The notes beneath the pieces were generated by a model. The model did no database searches. It saw nothing but the letters and a program-made list of their open reading frames with translations, and was not told where the DNA came from. A DNA stretch of 64,000 nt from Dimorphilus gyrociliatus (taxonomy: Eukaryota > Animalia > Annelida), in NCBI GenBank assembly GCA_904063045.1, contig CAJFCJ010000019.1:620001-684000 (forward strand). The letters are read 5' to 3'. Every line of letters starts with the position of its first letter. Positions within the stretch are counted from its first letter, which is position 1. This document shows positions 8,530 to 27,843 of this stretch, piece by piece. Made by a program: the position numbers and the translations under genes.

Positions 8530-9762
8530 ATGTATAACAATTCGAAGCCGGAAGTTGTTCCGAAAAAAGTCGTGTCTTTTCCAGTGCCCGATTTATTACC
8601 GGAACGCTCATATGCAACCTACGGCAAGGACTCAGATTTTCCAGCACCACCACCTACCCAACTGGTCATGAATAAAGAAACAGACAGGGATAGCGGAATT
8701 TACGTACAGTTTAGTCCGCCAACAGCGGCAGCGCCAGCCCAAAATACCTCCCAAGTAGATCCTGCCGCCCTGGTGGAGGAGAAAATCCGAAGTGGCCTTC
8801 ACCCTTGCCATCCAGAATTGTTGACCATATTCCTGCAAAATCTACATATGTCAAACTATGTGTCTTTATTCGTTCAGGCAGGCTATGATTTGGCCACCGT
8901 CTCGAAAATGACGCCGGCCGATCTAAGCGCTATCGGAATTCGAAATCCGAGTCACCGGAAGAGGCTTAAGACGGAGATCTCCCGACTTAAGATTCCCGAA
9001 TTACTACCCAATTTTTATCCACCGTCTCTAAGCGTTCTACTGCAACTTCTCTGCCTACCGCATCTGGAACCAGTTCTCAATTCTCACGGCTATAAAACAA
9101 TTTCTAGCTTACTCGAGTTAACTTGGGAAGACCTCGAGGAGGTCGGAGTTACAAAGTTAGGCGAACAGAAGAAGTTAGTAGTGGCCGTCGACAAACTGCG
9201 CAAACTCGATTCCTCGCCTCATTCGACACACAATCAAGCGAATTATCCACCCTCTCCGGACGTCGTTGCTATTCAAGTATCGGAAGCGCCATCTGGTGTC
9301 GAATCAAGCCACAATCGAATTGGTTATTCCGGTTCGTTAACTAGGCGTTCAGTATCGACATTTACGAGCTCGGACGCTTTGATAACTCGCCAAAAAACAC
9401 CTCCTCCTCCGCCCCCCAAAAGGGTAAACAGCGTTAAGGCGTCGGCTTCCCCGTCACTAAAACCAAAGCCAATTTATCCACCAAAGCCGCCATCTCCTGC
9501 TCCAAAGCCGAAAATGACACCTCGAGTCGTTAGCTCATCAACCGATGTTCCTCGGCTAGAGGCGCATAACGCTGCCGTAACAAGGAGGCAGGCATCAGAC
9601 GACAGTACAAGTTCGTCTAATGAGGGATTACATTTCGCCAATGAAGACGTGGGTACAATTAGACAGAAATCGTCTAATCCAAATGTTTTGAATGAACTAG
9701 ATACAATGCTTCAAGGTCTTACAGATGAACTGGATGCAATTTTGAAAAAACAATTCAAGTAG
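8530..9762 (+). CDS. Caskin-like tandem SAM domain scaffold protein, intronless CDS
   Basis: Two SAM domains (FLQNLHMSNYVSLFVQAGYDL...IGIRNPSHRKRL; LLQLLCLPHLEPVLNSHGY...VGVTKLGEQKKL), a proline-rich region, and C-terminal LNELDTMLQGLTDELDAIL resembling the Caskin C-terminal helix. In-frame TAA at 8485 upstream. Confidence 0.8.
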   Translation: MYNNSKPEVVPKKVVSFPVPDLLPERSYATYGKDSDFPAPPPTQLVMNKETDRDSGIYVQFSPPTAAAPAQNTSQVDPAALVEEKIRSGLHPCHPELLTIFLQNLHMSNYVSLFVQAGYDLATVSKMTPADLSAIGIRNPSHRKRLKTEISRLKIPELLPNFYPPSLSVLLQLLCLPHLEPVLNSHGYKTISSLLELTWEDLEEVGVTKLGEQKKLVVAVDKLRKLDSSPHSTHNQANYPPSPDVVAIQVSEAPSGVESSHNRIGYSGSLTRRSVSTFTSSDALITRQKTPPPPPPKRVNSVKASASPSLKPKPIYPPKPPSPAPKPKMTPRVVSSSTDVPRLEAHNAAVTRRQASDDSTSSSNEGLHFANEDVGTIRQKSSNPNVLNELDTMLQGLTDELDAILKKQFK

Positions 9763-9889
9763 TTTTCTTTATAGATGGTGCTTAATTATCTATACAAAGT
9801 GTTTTACTCGCTAATCCTTATATAAATAAAAAAAACCTATGCAAGCTCTGTTTTCGTTATAAAAGAAACAAATTCAACTGTTGTGATTT

Positions 9890-11389
9890 TTAAACTACAC
9901 CTTTCTTCCTGGGGTTCTTCTTAGGTCTATGCACCTCTGCTGAGGTTATTAGAACACGTTTTTCAGAATCTGATTTTTTTACCATGACTGTTCTTCCACC
10001 AGAGCTAGTAAACTCAATAGAAGGTTTAAAATCTTCTTTTAATAAAGAAGCTAATTTGGAATGTTTCTTTTCCTGTTCAATTTTCAAAGAGATTTGTTTT
10101 TTTATAGGTTCTGGCGATGGAATAATAATTTCTTCAGTATCCGAATCACTATCAATTAATACTTCTACTTTCTCTTCAATTTTATTATTCGTATCATCAG
10201 TCTTAGCTTCATTTGATGTAATTTGTCTGTTTTCATCCTCAATCGTGCAAACACTATTAACAACACCCCTACTTTTAGTTGATTGATTGATTTCTTTACT
10301 TGTTTTTGTCGCAAAAATAGGTGGGTTCATTTCGTGTGGTTCAACTTTTTGTTCAGGTAGAAATCTTTCCATATACGTTTTAGCCAACTCGAAATCAAAG
10401 TCAAAACTTTCAGCAAGAAAACCAAATGTAAAATATCTAAATCTTGTTGAAAAGATTAGAAATAAGTAGAACTTTATGTTTGAATTGATACATTGGAACA
10501 TTATGTAGCAAATTTCCAAGTTTTGAAAGTAGTTTGAGTAATTTAGTATGTTATCTTCAAAAAAGCAATTGATATGAAATTTTATTGGAATATTCTCAGT
10601 CCAGACAGCAATTCTGTAACAAAGGAATGGAATCTCTGTAATTAATCTTAAAATTGAGACAATTGCTTGTAGTTTAACACTTCTTCCGTCTTTAAATTCC
10701 TCGGAATTTACTGAAATTAACGAACGGATTGACATAATTTTCACTTGTATAAATAGAGCCGAATTAACGGCTAGAATTAGCAACCATGGTATTAAAACAA
10801 AGATTATAACATAAGCGTATTTGTCGTAATATTGATAGCTCTGCTGATTATGTAGGTCAGTCGTGCATATAACTTCTCTTGATGAACCATCCTTAAAATC
10901 CATAACAACCACCCGAAATTGAAAATAATTTACAAAATGGAATACAACAACTACACCACTCACGGCGAATGCTAATTTAACGGCTTTCTTTACAGTGCTG
11001 TATCTGACGGACTTTTCAGCGTGTAATCCGAACATGTAACCGTCAACAGTTAGGGTGATTATTAAAGCAGACATAACAACTTGCAGACTTTGAGTTATAG
11101 GGAAGGCGTGGGCATAAAAGGTTGGAGATAGTGGAGATCGAGAACTAACTTGAGAATACTCCGAGGAGAGTAGCATTAACATTAGGATTGTATAGACAAT
11201 ATCGGCTAAACTCAAGAAAGTCATATAAACCGATGGAGGACTCTTCATCCGTTTTTGATTAAAGATGATTATCAACATCGAATTGCCTAATAGCCCAAAC
11301 GCAGCCAAACTTGGCATTAAAATACCAAATGCGATATGTTTAGAAGATCCAATTTCTTCTATCTCTCGAGTTTTTTCCGCTAAAGACAT
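9890..11389 (-). CDS. Rhodopsin-class peptide GPCR, FMRFamide/myosuppressin-receptor-like, intronless CDS
   Basis: Seven hydrophobic segments: GLLGN (TM1), LSLAD (TM2), TVDGY in place of DRY, IPWL (TM5), NSNIKFYLF (TM7). Long charged C-tail. First ATG at 11389. Confidence 0.8.
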   Translation of the reverse strand: MSLAEKTREIEEIGSSKHIAFGILMPSLAAFGLLGNSMLIIIFNQKRMKSPPSVYMTFLSLADIVYTILMLMLLSSEYSQVSSRSPLSPTFYAHAFPITQSLQVVMSALIITLTVDGYMFGLHAEKSVRYSTVKKAVKLAFAVSGVVVVFHFVNYFQFRVVVMDFKDGSSREVICTTDLHNQQSYQYYDKYAYVIIFVLIPWLLILAVNSALFIQVKIMSIRSLISVNSEEFKDGRSVKLQAIVSILRLITEIPFLCYRIAVWTENIPIKFHINCFFEDNILNYSNYFQNLEICYIMFQCINSNIKFYLFLIFSTRFRYFTFGFLAESFDFDFELAKTYMERFLPEQKVEPHEMNPPIFATKTSKEINQSTKSRGVVNSVCTIEDENRQITSNEAKTDDTNNKIEEKVEVLIDSDSDTEEIIIPSPEPIKKQISLKIEQEKKHSKLASLLKEDFKPSIEFTSSGGRTVMVKKSDSEKRVLITSAEVHRPKKNPRKKGVV

Positions 11390-20329: not shown

Positions 20330-21820
20330 ATGCCTCCGAAAAAGAAAAACGCGGGTGGTTCTAAAGGGGCCCATGCTCTCCCTCCTCCTATTCCTGAAGG
20401 TGAAATCCTTACAGATAACCAGAAAAAACAGTGGAAAGTGGGGAACGCCATTGGATCGGGAGGCTTTGGTTTAATTTATCTAGGTAAGTCTACTTACAAT
20501 TTGACAAGTCTTCAATTAATTTGTTGATAACATTTCAGCAAGTTCCGATATTGAAAAGAAAGTAACTACATCAACAGCTGAATATGTTCTGAAAATTGTA
20601 ATTATGTCAATTGGAATAGTACTATAAATCACTAAAAAATTTATTCATATTTTAGGAGCCTGTTGGAAATGGACCTCTCTTCTGCGAGATTAATTTTTAT
20701 ATTAAAGCAGCAAAGAAAGATATGGGTAAATATCTATATATGATCCTATAGCATAATTTTTAATGTTAATATAATTTAGTCGAATCGTGGAAGAAAAAGA
20801 GAAAGCAATATCATTTGGGCATTCCCATCTATATAGCTTCTGGTCAACACGAAAGGAGCGGTCATAAATACCGGTTTATGATTATGCAAAGATTCTCGAC
20901 AGACTTACAGAAGCTGTTTGAAAAGAATAATAAATCTTTTAAGGAATCAGACTGTTTTTTGATATTTTTACAAGTTGTAAGTTATAGAAAAGCAATTATG
21001 ATGACACTTTATTCACTTTTTGGTATGTCTAAAATATAGTTAGATACTTTGGAATATATACACGAAAAAGGTTATGTTCATGCTGATATAAAAGCCTCAA
21101 ATCTGCTAATTGATATAGATGATGATTCAAAGGTTTGAATATTCTTCAAAAATTTCACGTGTAATTATATCGCATATTGCTTCAGGTTTATTTGGTTGAT
21201 TATGGTTTGGCAACAAGATATCTTTCTAGCAGTAATCATAAACCTTACAAAGAAGATAAACGTAAATGTCATGATGGAACAATCGAATTTACAAGTCTCG
21301 ATGCTCATAGAGGAGCAGGTTTTAAATGAAATTTCATATTTATTTAATTTTTATATCTGTTCCTAACTTGAGTACAGATCCTTCTAGAAGAGGAGACTTG
21401 GAAATACTTATGTATTGTCTTATTCAATGGTTAATTGGAAAGTTACCGTGGGAAGACAAGCTAACGGATAAAGAATATGTAATGAGAAAGAAAAACGAGT
21501 AAGTTTTATATTGACCTCCGTTAAATCTTTTGAATTTGTGTCTTTCAGTTTTATGAAAAATATAGGAAGTTCATTAAAACGAATGTTTGCGGGAAATTCT
21601 TACTTAGGTAAGTAAATTTTTTATTTTTTTTTTAATTACAAGAATATGAAAAGAAGGTTCTTTATTGAACAGACTCATTAGTTGGATTAGTTAACTATAT
21701 CAAAGAACTTGAATACGACGAAAGCCCCGACTATAGCCGATGTAGAAATTATATAGTATCTGCATTAGAAGAAATAGGAGAGGATTCAAACAGTCAATTA
21801 ACTATAACAATGGTAAAACT

Positions 21821-21857
<37 letters not shown>

Positions 21858-22550
21858 TAGATCATTTCTTTACTAAACTTTCATCAATTAGATGCCCCGA
21901 AAGCGTGGGTCTGTTGGTCATTTGTCTGACATTAGTAAAAGACAGAGACAGAAAAGTCCTGATCAAACAACATCCGGTAAAACTAATTACATACTATTTT
22001 CTATATGGTTACAATTCGTTACTTAAGCAGGAACACAAAGAGGACGAAGGGTTTTAAAAAAGGTGGCAGTGGCAGCTAAAGATTCTTCGTCAGAAAGGGA
22101 AATTGAATCTGATATGCCTCAAAAGAAGCCACAGCCTAAAAGACTAAATGAAATTAAGAAATCTGCTATTCAAACGAAAAGGACAAATCATAAACACTTG
22201 CACAAAAGCCTCCTTACAGACGATGATGAAGAAGAAAATGATAATTATGATTCTGAGTCAAGTAGTGAGGAAGAATGGGAAGAGCCTGCCCATAAAAAAG
22301 CAACTAAAAAGCAAATTCTGACAAGAACAAGGTAATTTAAATTCTGTTTAATAAAAATTTATACATATTGTATTATAATATACTTATATTTTGTTTCAGT
22401 AAACAAAAAAAAGGGGATACGGATAAAATTAGTACTTCCTCTAAAAAACAGACTGTGCCGAAAAAAACTGTAAAACGCGTTCAACGACGTAGTACGGCCA
22501 CTCAAACATCCCCTGGTTTAAAGGGCCTCAAAAAAAAGATGAAAAAGTAG
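20330..22550 (+). CDS. VRK1: Vaccinia-related kinase (VRK1/ballchen-like), about 12 exons
   Basis: [80 protein letters not shown]. Basic-acidic-basic C-tail. The invertebrate gene is probably a pro-ortholog of VRK1/VRK2. Confidence 0.95.
21819..21858. repeat. (TA)n microsatellite in a VRK intron
   Basis: Directly visible. Confidence 0.9.
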
Positions 22551-22582
22551 CGTAGAATAGTTGTGTGTAGTTCTATAATATC

Positions 22583-24549
22583 CTATTGGATATTCACAGT
22601 TATCGGCTGTAAGAGAACTCTTTAATTGTGTTATGAAAACAGAATGTAAAAATCGATACCTTTTTACAGAGGCAGCATTTGCCAAATACAAGTTTCATAC
22701 TTTTTCTTGTATCAGGTCTTGTGTAGAGCCACTAATGAAAAAAATTTATACAATAATTTAAACAGAAGCACTGGAAATACGATTTTAATGTAATATATAC
22801 CTTTACAAGACAAGCGCTATGATACGTTTGTTGACACGACTGACAGACCGTATCTGGAATTTTTTCGCTTTCTGGATGATTAAATAATAAACAAATGCCG
22901 CATTCGGGTTGAGAAGAGTCTGGATTTTCGTCACGTTTCTTAAACTTCATCTCGAATATACTTTCCAAGTTAGAAACAAGACTTTCTTCACAGTTCCTTT
23001 TAGAATATTTTTAAGCGTTACATGTGTTTATAGCAGTCTTTTTATATTAATTTGATACCATAAATGAGCGTTTTCGTGTAAAAATTTCTCATATTTCATT
23101 GCATCTGTAGTAAAAAACATTCGAAACAATTTATATGGTTTTCTAAAACGGATTTTTTCTTAATCAGATTCTTTCTATTACCTTTCGTTGGTCCTAAAAA
23201 TTTTAAAGTTGGTAAAGATTGAGGGCATCTAACATCAACAGTAATTGTCATTGAAACACTTTGTTCTAAAAGAAAATACATATAATCCGTTGGTTGAACG
23301 ATAAAGATGCTAATAATATATAATCCTACCTATATATATTTGCCTAAAAGTCTCTTTATATTTAAGAGAAGAATCAGGTTGTATAACCCAAGTTTCCTCT
23401 TCCAGTTCGTCAAATATTTTCCAAAGATATTGATATTTTTTAAGAGATTCCTCAAATTCGTTAAAAATGTCAAGAATTTTGCTTTTCTTAAAAAAAAGAA
23501 TTGATAGTTAAAAACTATAATGTACATATATATATATATTTTTATTGTCTTTACTTCCGGTATCCATTTAAAATCGAATTTCTCCGGAAGCGAACAAATA
23601 ACTATAGGAGCCACTCTTGGATACTATGAACATTTAGCCATTTAGATAATCAAGATAAGATATTCATTTCTAGTTGCGGTTTAATTACCTCGTTGTCTAG
23701 GTTTATTTTAAATAAATGGTTTCTATCAGCTTCGTCAATACCTCTTAAATGTATCTCTTTTAAATCGGCATCGACATATTGAATCCTAGATGGAAAATAA
23801 ATCGAATACAAATCAATAAAAATACTTTTATCTGGCCATTTATCGTGGGGAACGTTGATAGCTTTGATTAATATTCTTCCCGCACAATTTACCGATATTA
23901 ATGCTGTTCTTTTAACCTTTTATGTTTTAGACGCTCGATAAAAATTAGTATAATTTTCAGACGTCTAACATACTAAATCACTTCTCTTTTTTTACTACTA
24001 TTGGACGTACCTATTCCATCCTATTTCTGCCATTTCATCAACTAAACGTTTATAGTTTTTGAAGTGTAGACCGTCTTTAAATGAATTTTGATTTATTACG
24101 GATTTCTATAAAATTGAATAAATGTTTAAAAACAATTTATTTATAGTTAGATGTAAAATTGTACCGATTCATTGTAAAAATGATGGATAATATTGTCCAA
24201 AATGGATTCTTCGTTCAATGACTATAAATATATTAACGGAATATATTTCACTATACTATGAATGATTCGTTATTGAGCTTACTTCTCTGATATTTGACGT
24301 TAATTTCCTTAATTTTATATTATCGCACTTAAACCAGCTTGTTTTATCTAAGTCTGTAGGTTTTTTAAGGTCAATAAATATTTCGTGATCCTAAAGTAAA
24401 AACAACAAAGTATAATCTTTAAAGTTTAGATATCAATAATGACATACATCATATCTAAGATAACCAGCGTATCTTGAAGAATCTTTTTTTAAGCATACTA
24501 TTAAGGGATATTGGTCGGTAAAATTAAGTTCTCCACTTTTAGTATCCAT
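22583..24549 (-). CDS. FANCL: E3 ubiquitin ligase FANCL, multi-exon
   Basis: ATG at 24549 (MDTKSGELNFTDQYPLIVCLKK...YAGYL). DRWD-like VSMTITVDVRCPQSLPTLKFLG. C-terminal RING ECGICLLF...PDTVCQSCQQTYHSACLVK|WLYTRPDTRKSMKLVFGKCCLCKK|PITVNIQ* with stop at 22583. Confidence 0.9.
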
Positions 24550-25008: not shown

Positions 25009-27843
25009 ATGTCGAAGCCGCTCTTTTTGAACACCAATGGTGAATTGGAGAATAAAATTAAAGAGCTCAGCTTATTAAAGAGCCCCGAAAGATCAGCTAG
25101 AAAAGAAGTAAAATACCTTGGTGACGATGATGACCACTCTTCGAGAGCTCCTAGGTCAGCTTTTTCACCCTCACCTCGTATGGATGAACTACAACGTTTC
25201 GAGCACAAGCATCAAGTTGTAGCGGAGATGTCTGCAGCCTACAAAAATCTATTGGTTTCCATTGGTGAAGACCCAGGCCGTCAAGGTTTGCTTAAGACAC
25301 CGGACAGAGCAGCCAAAGCTTTCCTCTACTTTACTAGAGGTTACGACGAGAAGATATCAGGTGATTTCTTATATTAAATTCGATTTTGGACTTTTGCCCT
25401 TGTAAGATAAGACAACAGTAACTTCGTAAATACATACTATTGTGTTTTTACTGAACGAAACATGAAAAGTCAGATGCCAATAAGCTGATCAATGTCGTTC
25501 GCATATTTGTCCCGTCTTTTCATTTCCGTCTTTTAGCTAGTAACGCCCACGCTGTGCATAATTGCCACGAAATTGGTAGGTTATATTTAGAAACACGCCG
25601 ATAGGCGGTCAGTGATCGCCCTAATTTTTATTCGACAAATTGTATAAGAATTGAGGCTGACATGGTAACCCGTTGATCACATTTCTTTCACTTTTTATTC
25701 CCCATAAGAGGAAAAGTTGGGAAAAAGTCATGAAATAGTTACAAGTTATAAATAATAACATTTAAAGGGAATTTACAAGAGGAGAAATAAAAAGATAATA
25801 GGAGTATTACTTCTTTTTTTTTCTAATATAAAAAGAATAAAAGATTTCTCAGATTTCTAGTTCATGTATAATAATATTTAATAATTTATCAATGCTCTAA
25901 TTACATTGAAATCCCTGTAATCTTTTATTGAATAATTATGAATGAAGAGTAAAAAACAAGAATATGTTGTTAAAACCGTAGGACTAATTAGACATATGAA
26001 AACTGTGTTTATAGTTTCGTTGGGAGACGAAATGATAGAACCTTACAGTTAATTAAAAGTTGAAAATTTATATTTATTGTTAAAAAGGAAAATTAAAAAG
26101 GTATATATAATGTTAATAAAGTAGCAGGTGCCCTTATGTACTCTTCTTTATGAGTTTCTTCTTTAATATTTCACTTTTTATTCTCTCACTCTCTCTCTAT
26201 CTCTCTCTTTCTATCTTATTATTCTCTAATCGAGTGTTTCTTATTTCATTAAAACTGAATATATATATGTCTTATAGATGTTCTAAACGATGCGATTTTC
26301 GACGAGGATACAGACGAAATGGTTATTGTTAAGAATATTGAAATGTTCTCAATGTGCGAGCATCATCTTGTTCCTTTTATTGGAAAGGTATTTGATCTTT
26401 CGATACATATTTTTCTTTTATTATTACGTACAGCGCCAATATTTATTTAATACTTTTTCTGTATTTAGGTATCAATTGGTTACTTGCCCAATAAAAGAGT
26501 AATAGGCTTAAGTAAATTAGCCAGGTATTTATAATTTCCTATCTTGATTTTCTTTCTTATTTTTGAGAATGAATAAAATTGTTTAATTAATTTAATTATA
26601 CATTGCAGAATTGTGGAGGTGTACAGTAGAAGATTGCAAGGTAAAAATGGAACTTACTTTTATTTGTTTATAATTAATAGATTAAAAAAAAAATTGAGAA
26701 AAGCAAAAAGAATAGAAAAGAGAAAATAACTCATTTTTTTTTAAGTTAAAGGGAAAACTAGTAGGAAACTAATTTCGATATAATCTAAAGAAAAATCTAG
26801 ACTTAAATAATAATAAGGGAAAATACAAATTCCGTTTTAAAATAACTGGAGTTTTTGTACGAGAACGCCGCATATATATCGACGCAAGCCCCAATCGAAT
26901 ATTGCAATAGCATGTTAATGAGGCAGCAATATTCAGCAATACAGTTTCTGTTTGCATGTTTGGACATTTTGGTCGCTATTTCAGTAATACAACATTTTGC
27001 CCGTATGTCGAAATATAAATATAACAATATAGTTGGTATTCTATCAGTTCAAGAACGGCTTTCAAAACAAATTGCTGAAGCGGTTGTTACTGCTGTTCAA
27101 CCATTCGGTGTTGCTGTCAACATTGAGGCAACGTAAGTTCCCAATGCACGTGTAAATTCTCAGAAAAGAGATGATGTTTGCATAGTGTGCATAACAGTAT
27201 ATTAGTTACTTTTTTATATTTTTCTGTAATTATTTATGAACGAATTAGGCCTGTAGCTTTTCAATGTTTTTTTTTATTATTATTGTTATTTTACTGCATT
27301 TTTATCCTTTCTCAATCAAGCTATTCCTTATTTTATTGTTTACCCTTCAATTTTTTTCGCAGTACAAGAACGTCTCACTAAACAAATAGCACTAGCGATT
27401 TTCGAAGCAATAAGTCCTGCAGGTGTCGCTGTTGTTTGCGAAGCTTCGTGAGTGTACTAAAAAAAAGCATATTTCTTTTTTTACATATATTCCTTTTGTT
27501 TCCTTATATATGTATATGTAGATATAGAATTAGCATGCACAGACTATCTTTCATATTAATTTTATAGAGTATGCAGTATGTTTATCCATATACTGCACTT
27601 ATAGATTAGCAATTGAAGAGTTTAACAGGACATTAAAAAGCTTAAATGCATCATGCATTGATAATTTGTACAGCTTTATATTCAATATTCAATTGCCTAT
27701 TTTCCTCTCCAATTAGGCATATGTGCATGGTGATGAGAGGCGTGCAGAAAATTAATAGTAGGACCATAACGAGCACAATGTTAGGCGTCTTCAGGGAAGA
27801 TCCCAAGACTAGAGAGGAATTTTTAACCTTGATTAAAGAATAA
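25009..27843 (+). CDS. GCH1: GTP cyclohydrolase 1; exons 25009-25360, 26278-26387, 26469-26524, 26609-26640, [27048-27132 OR 27363-27447], 27717-27843
   Basis: [65 protein letters not shown]. Internal exon sizes 110/56/32/85/127 match the vertebrate GCH1 structure as I recall it. Confidence 0.98.

Follow-up and report, generated by a model that had tools for sequence, protein, structure and literature searches.

The window analysed here, that is, the whole stretch of 64,000 nucleotides taken from contig CAJFCJ010000019.1 of Dimorphilus gyrociliatus, is AT-rich animal DNA, and its forward strand carries the gene of GTP cyclohydrolase 1 (GCH1), whose exon 5 is present in two copies, 5a and 5b. 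The gene was compared with the orthologous gene of a related lineage, which lies on an 18 kb Logan contig from run SRR23372229 (hereafter L001). RNA evidence was taken from three public runs covering the stretch (X1, X2 and X3), all in the form of assembled contigs, and nearly all of the information comes from one sample. The features of the gene are as follows:

25009–27843, forward strand: GCH1 coding region, from sequence reading, with a product of 253 amino acids with either exon 5
25009–25360, forward strand: exon 1, from sequence reading, with joints in RNA contigs
26278–26387, forward strand: exon 2, from sequence reading, with joints in RNA contigs
26469–26524, forward strand: exon 3, from sequence reading, with joints in RNA contigs
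26609–26640, forward strand: exon 4, 32 nt, the upstream partner common to 5a and 5b, with the joint from 26640 to 27363 in X3 contigs
26871–27047, forward strand: conserved intron block directly upstream of 5a, 82–94% identical to L001 in 50-nt windows, a candidate splicing control region
27048–27132, forward strand: exon 5a, the alternative copy, with intact AG/GT and frame and a match to Pfam PF01227; no spliced RNA found in the contigs
27133–27362, forward strand: intron between 5a and 5b, 230 nt, with the first ~140 nt and the last ~40 nt conserved relative to L001
27363–27447, forward strand: exon 5b, the copy in all spliced RNA seen, with the joints 4-5b and 5b-6 in X3
27717–27843, forward strand: exon 6, the shared downstream partner, with the His-x-Cys zinc site and the C-terminal helix, from sequence reading and RNA joints

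The 5b form (P0326) scores 251 bits against PF01227 over the whole protein (cutoff 27), and its product is that of the public model DgyrCDS11428. The open frame of exon 1 is 100% identical to another public protein, DgyrCDS11425, a product of 212 amino acids in which translation continues past the exon 4 donor into the intron, exons 5 and 6 being absent. The catalytic Cys-Glu-His-His, the guanine-binding Glu after Gln and the His-x-Cys are all present in the spliced products, whichever cassette is used. In the neighbourhood of the gene, FANCL adjoins GCH1 in Capitella (L006, 1–1227) and in Lingula (L013, 1–398), to be compared with 20330–24549 in the window; this FANCL–GCH1 neighbourhood is conserved across lophotrochozoans.

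The first-pass annotation of this DNA had described two tandem exon 5 copies of 85 nt each, in the same phase, with intact splice sites and 230 nt apart, and the description was confirmed in full; spliced translation also returned the two peptides exactly as they had been given. Both copies are preceded by AG, and they are followed by GTAAGT (5a) and GTGAGT (5b). They share 49 of 85 bases and 18 of 29 residues, the other 11 residues being different, and alignment between the copies is lost in their intron flanks. Since both match PF01227 at the same profile positions, 109–139 (24.3 bits for 5a, 27.3 bits for 5b), their likeness reflects real homology and not chance. Adjacency, length, phase, homology and splice sites are all those of a tandem-duplicated exon pair. 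Splicing as 4-5a-6 or as 4-5b-6 gives an open frame of 253 amino acids. When both cassettes are included, a TAA is reached six codons into 5b, and when both are skipped, a TGA is reached five codons into exon 6, which are the early stops to be expected from the frame shift that had been proposed for both cases. Because 85 is no multiple of three, the enzyme is encoded only by messages with exactly one cassette.

In L001, where the protein of exon 1 is 91% identical to that of D. gyrociliatus, both cassettes are present with intact frame and splice sites, and their peptides are identical to those of D. gyrociliatus. Between the two lineages, pS reaches 0.71 in exons 1–4, that is, saturation, and 0.51 in exon 6, and an ordinary intron is 32–68% identical in 50-nt windows, typically ~50%, with many indels. 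Exon 5a differs from its L001 counterpart at 5 of 85 bases (pS 0.22) and exon 5b at 4 of 85 (pS 0.18), all of these being synonymous changes at third positions. Five random changes in 5a would all be synonymous with a probability of about 1e-3, and at an intron-like mismatch rate of 0.3 a stretch of 85 nt would show no more than five differences with a probability of about 4e-8. Moreover, relative to the constitutive exons, synonymous changes are reduced 3- to 4-fold in both cassettes (Fisher p 1e-4 and 2e-5). The per-exon check proposed in the first-pass annotation thus gave no non-synonymous change in either exon, with five synonymous ones in 5a and four in 5b. Neutral decay of 5a in related species, which the same annotation had named as the outcome that would speak against it, was not seen; the opposite, purifying selection, was found. 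As estimated from one related lineage and five substitutions in 5a, both copies are evidently kept by selection, with 5a under strong purifying selection. Between 5a and 5b themselves, pS is 0.78 (saturated) and pN is 0.29, from which it follows that the duplication is far older than the split between D. gyrociliatus and L001 and that the copy stayed coding.

The intron sequence around 5a is conserved as well: about 180 nt upstream of 5a, the first ~140 nt after it and the last ~40 nt before 5b are 80–94% identical to L001, and the intron after 5b is ~50% identical. In L001, the intron between 5a and 5b is 507 nt long owing to a large insertion in its middle, and its ends are conserved. A coding extension of 5a into the upstream open frame (26846–27047) was considered and is ruled out by 1-nt indels relative to L001, which mark the block 26871–27047 as non-coding. 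Taken together, strong constraint on the protein, few synonymous changes and conserved sequence on either side form the pattern classically seen in regulated alternative exons. Elsewhere in the gene, intron 1 contains an island of 260 nt (25476–25735; L001 ~9661–9920) that is non-coding and ~96% identical between the lineages, which exceeds the exons. Rfam gave no match for it, its folding is unexceptional on both strands, and it may be an enhancer.

As for the RNA, run X3 shows no difference from the window and contains every GCH1 splice joint except those of 5a, and on these grounds X3 is taken to be RNA of the same strain. In X3, exon 4 is joined straight to 5b, with 5a skipped, at a depth of ~1695, and 5b is joined to exon 6 at a depth of ~2085. 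In X2, a coral metatranscriptome, one contig has the 5b-6 joint, and in it 5b is preceded by the exon 4 tail as a loose end. None of the joints 4-5a, 5a-6, 5a-5b or 4-6 direct occurs in the assembled RNA contigs, which drop rare variants; the missing 5a joints therefore mean that 5a is minor or absent in this sample, and not that it is never used. The genome authors' public annotation of D. gyrociliatus, which is based on transcripts, lists the 5b form and a form that retains intron 4 but no 5a form, and the 90% cluster of the D. gyrociliatus GCH1 protein holds only the 5b form and a truncated form. For the proposed comparison of the joints 4-5a-6 and 4-5b-6, the assembled contigs provide both 5b joints, at the depths given, and no joint for 5a. 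The either/or use proposed for the duplicated pair is forced by the frame; at the level of transcripts, contigs and annotation show 5b only. X1 and X2, RNA from an invertebrate and a coral metagenome, respectively, contain near-identical pieces of the D. gyrociliatus GCH1 transcript, which indicates that D. gyrociliatus is present, as a guest, in samples from corals or aquaria.

The intron that carries 5a also appears unspliced. An X3 contig that starts in exon 4, crosses 5a and reaches 5b (26611–27390) is colinear with the genome and has a depth of 204, whereas depth is 7–30 in intron 1 and zero in the middle of the intron after 5b (bin 27483–27603). Retention of the 5a-carrying intron thus stands at ~10% of exon depth, compared with 0–2% for the other introns, so that it is retained in roughly a tenth of the messages. 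DgyrCDS11425 is the same intron-4-retaining form as that seen in the RNA. The retention of the 5a intron fits slow, regulated splicing. The retention region 26641–26730 may itself represent a regulated "detained" intron or encode a dominant-negative product.

With regard to how one cassette is chosen over the other, the first-pass annotation had held that steric exclusion is not the mechanism, and this is borne out by the spacing, which is 230 nt in D. gyrociliatus and 507 nt in L001. U12-type sites are ruled out likewise. Pairing of a docking site with selectors was rejected too: the sole 12-nt match to the 5a donor (26649–26660) is missing from L001, and no conserved competing long-range RNA pairing emerged in either lineage, whether from RNAalifold, from a search for inverted repeats or from duplex folding. 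A 9-bp hairpin at 26897–26934, within the conserved block upstream of 5a (−12.1 kcal/mol, z −2.4), is modestly unusual; the hairpin over the 5a donor (−8.5 kcal/mol, z −0.9) is conserved and folds no better than shuffled sequence. No Rfam family matches the conserved GCH1 introns. The pyrimidine tract of 5b has 16 of 20 pyrimidines versus 11 of 20 for 5a, and the better tract of 5b fits its role as the default exon. In summary, the filter formed by the frame and the stop codons is the only evident mechanism of exclusivity.

On the protein side, 113 GCH1 proteins of other animals and fungi, giving 105 distinct exon 5 peptides, were used as the comparison set, and human numbering was obtained by alignment to solved structures. 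All 16 of the positions that are invariant or nearly so among the 105 peptides are kept in 5a (Gln, Glu, Arg, Leu, Lys, Gln, Ile, Ala, Ala, Ala, Pro, Gly, Val, Val, Glu and Ala), and the Gln-Glu-Arg-Leu motif is retained in both cassettes. At human position 186, 5a has Ser where 99% carry Thr, and its Thr 195, Phe 200 and Asn 205 (human numbering) are found in none of the 105 other peptides. Closeness to other GCH1 sequences favours 5b in 77 of the 105, 5a in 14, and neither in the remaining 14, which are ties; identity to exon 5 of Capitella is 22 of 29 residues for each cassette. The view of 5b as ancestral-like and 5a as diverged is therefore upheld only as a tendency across the comparison set.

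In the AlphaFold model of the Capitella orthologue, exon 5 forms a helix (206–221) and a strand (225–234) with pLDDT of ~88–97, which we take to be the second helix and the third strand of the T-fold. By alignment, exon 5 corresponds to human residues 181–209, E183 included. This Glu is the guanine-recognition residue of the human enzyme (PMC7750480), which supports the earlier placing of the Gln-Glu-Arg-Leu motif in the GTP-binding core. It has also been reported that the 20-stranded barrel of the human enzyme, to which the exon 5 strand belongs, changes its radius on BH4 inhibition (PMC7750480). Speculatively, and judging from its residues and the modelled structure, the 5a enzyme may differ from the 5b enzyme in assembly, stability or allosteric behaviour. 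The contrasts in kinetics, feedback or place of use that the first-pass annotation had suggested are likewise speculative.

On these observations, 5a is very probably a functional coding exon, to judge by its conservation, and a second version of the GCH1 enzyme is a likely prediction. The explanation to which we give a good, though by no means overwhelming, chance is that 5b serves as the default and that 5a is a coding alternative of rare or local use, both exons being descended from an old duplication. Exon 5 would have been duplicated in tandem in the lineage of Dimorphilus, giving two interchangeable 85-nt cassettes, each of which codes for a helix and a strand of the catalytic T-fold, immediately behind the guanine-recognising Glu and immediately ahead of the His-x-Cys zinc site. 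Messages with both cassettes or with neither would run into an early stop and presumably be degraded. 5b, with its stronger pyrimidine tract, would be used by default, and 5a would be used rarely, or in certain cells or stages or in the dwarf male, under the putative control of the conserved intron sequence around it. The predicted 5a enzyme would keep all the invariant residues, be changed at 11 of 29 positions relative to the 5b enzyme and carry three residues that are new to GCH1, among them an Asn in the barrel strand.

An unlikely alternative is that 5a is a non-coding regulatory exon of the "poison" or decoy kind, through which messages with premature stops tune GCH1 output, its conservation being at the RNA level only. 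Such a role would suit the stop that follows six codons after the inclusion of both cassettes, the ~10% retention of the 5a intron, which is annotated as a truncated form, and the nucleotide-level constraint on both exons and their flanks. Nevertheless, if codon position were irrelevant, five of five changes in 5a would hardly fall on synonymous third positions (P ~1e-3 to 4e-3), every invariant GCH1 residue is kept in 5a despite saturated divergence from 5b, and the 5a-5b joint is absent from the RNA contigs. Less probable again is the reading in which 5a is no exon at all and its conservation comes from an overlapping element, for instance an enhancer in the DNA or a separate transcript arising in the intron. 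The gene does hold conserved non-coding DNA, as the even better conserved island of intron 1 demonstrates, and the colinear RNA contig across 26611–27390 could be such a transcript. However, the conservation peak coincides with exon 5a and its splice sites, the substitutions track the codon pattern of the GCH1 frame, Rfam gives no match, and the colinear contig spans exon 4 into 5b, as is expected of unspliced pre-mRNA. That 5a is an unused relic of the duplication in neutral drift is highly improbable: the lack of spliced RNA with 5a in the contigs and the single exon 5 of other lophotrochozoans would agree with it, but 5a is 94% identical to L001, against ~50% for the intron and saturation at synonymous sites, both lineages have it with intact frame and splice sites, and the combination of constraint, low synonymous rate and conserved flanks contradicts a decaying relic.

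Returning to 5a as a coding alternative, a further step can be proposed only tentatively and is rather doubtful. One gene may provide two core subunits of the homodecamer, and the 5a subunit, with its Asn in the barrel strand and its Phe in the preceding loop, might in particular cells alter the packing of the barrel and hence BH4 feedback or cooperativity, either alone or in decamers mixed with 5b.

GCH1 is the rate-limiting enzyme for the synthesis of tetrahydrobiopterin, and hence for that of dopamine, serotonin, nitric oxide and pterin pigments, and it is known to be regulated by partner proteins and by splice forms that truncate it. If the reading of 5a as a used coding exon is true, a helix-strand swap inside the catalytic fold, maintained by selection on both sides of a deep split, would tune GCH1 in a different manner and would also be a natural experiment on the β-barrel that relays the allosteric signal in the human enzyme. 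If the two-subunit reading is also true, pterin and monoamine synthesis could be controlled in a cell-specific manner without a gene duplicate. The public model set, for its part, is short of one probable form and contains a truncated one.

As regards its distribution, a single exon 5 is found in Capitella teleta, Owenia fusiformis, Lingula anatina, Lineus longissimus and Liolophura sinensis, and also in two further compact genomes. The search of other lophotrochozoan GCH1 loci for the duplication, which had been suggested beforehand, thus came out negative, five of five having one exon 5, and the pair is accordingly read as lineage-specific. No 5a-like exon occurs among the 113 GCH1 proteins (105 distinct exon 5 peptides), and a degenerate 5a pattern had no match in the JGI metagenomes. 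A possible closer relative, P0003 (L005), has only exon 1 within 10 kb and is uninformative. By these sequence searches, the 5a/5b pair is known only from D. gyrociliatus and the lineage of L001. A literature search found no paper on either/or exons in GCH1. Among molluscs, predicted isoforms of Dreissena (P0260/P0065) and Gigantopelta (P0261/P0107) have 4–5 residues inserted exactly at the exon 5/6 or 4/5 junction; such insertions, attributable to alternative splice sites, indicate that the borders of exon 5 vary elsewhere too. The GCH1 entries of Ascaris (P0021) and Polyodon (P0022) were considered as alternative exons and set aside, being exact internal repeats of the exon 2–4 region and probably artefacts.

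Among known systems, human GCH1 has six exons (structures 1FB1, 6Z80 and 7ALA), and its residues 181–209 are those to which the exon 5 discussed here aligns. Human and D. gyrociliatus GCH1 correspond in their 32-nt exon 4 and in the exon 5/6 boundaries. Vertebrate GCH1 has one exon 5, and its known splice variants truncate the C-terminus and are not known to swap a core segment. A closer parallel is found in Branchiostoma belcheri, where the isoforms X1 and X2 predicted in RefSeq (P0087/P0265), of 269 amino acids each, likewise differ only in one internal core exon, and the tandem exon copies (L016, 4143–4262 and 4746–4874) lie ~490 nt apart. The duplicated exon there, however, is the equivalent of exon 2, that is, the zinc exon with Cys-Glu-His-His, whereas exon 5 of amphioxus is single, and this predicted pair is an event independent of the Dimorphilus pair. 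In a wider sense, mutually exclusive exons that arose by tandem duplication are a well-known class in arthropod and vertebrate genes. The Dimorphilus pair differs from that class in that RNA use of 5a is unseen in the contigs and that no docking site and selector, U2/U12 incompatibility or steric limit was found; with it, the pair shares adjacency, length, phase, homology, intact splice sites, frame incompatibility, conserved flanks and a low synonymous rate.
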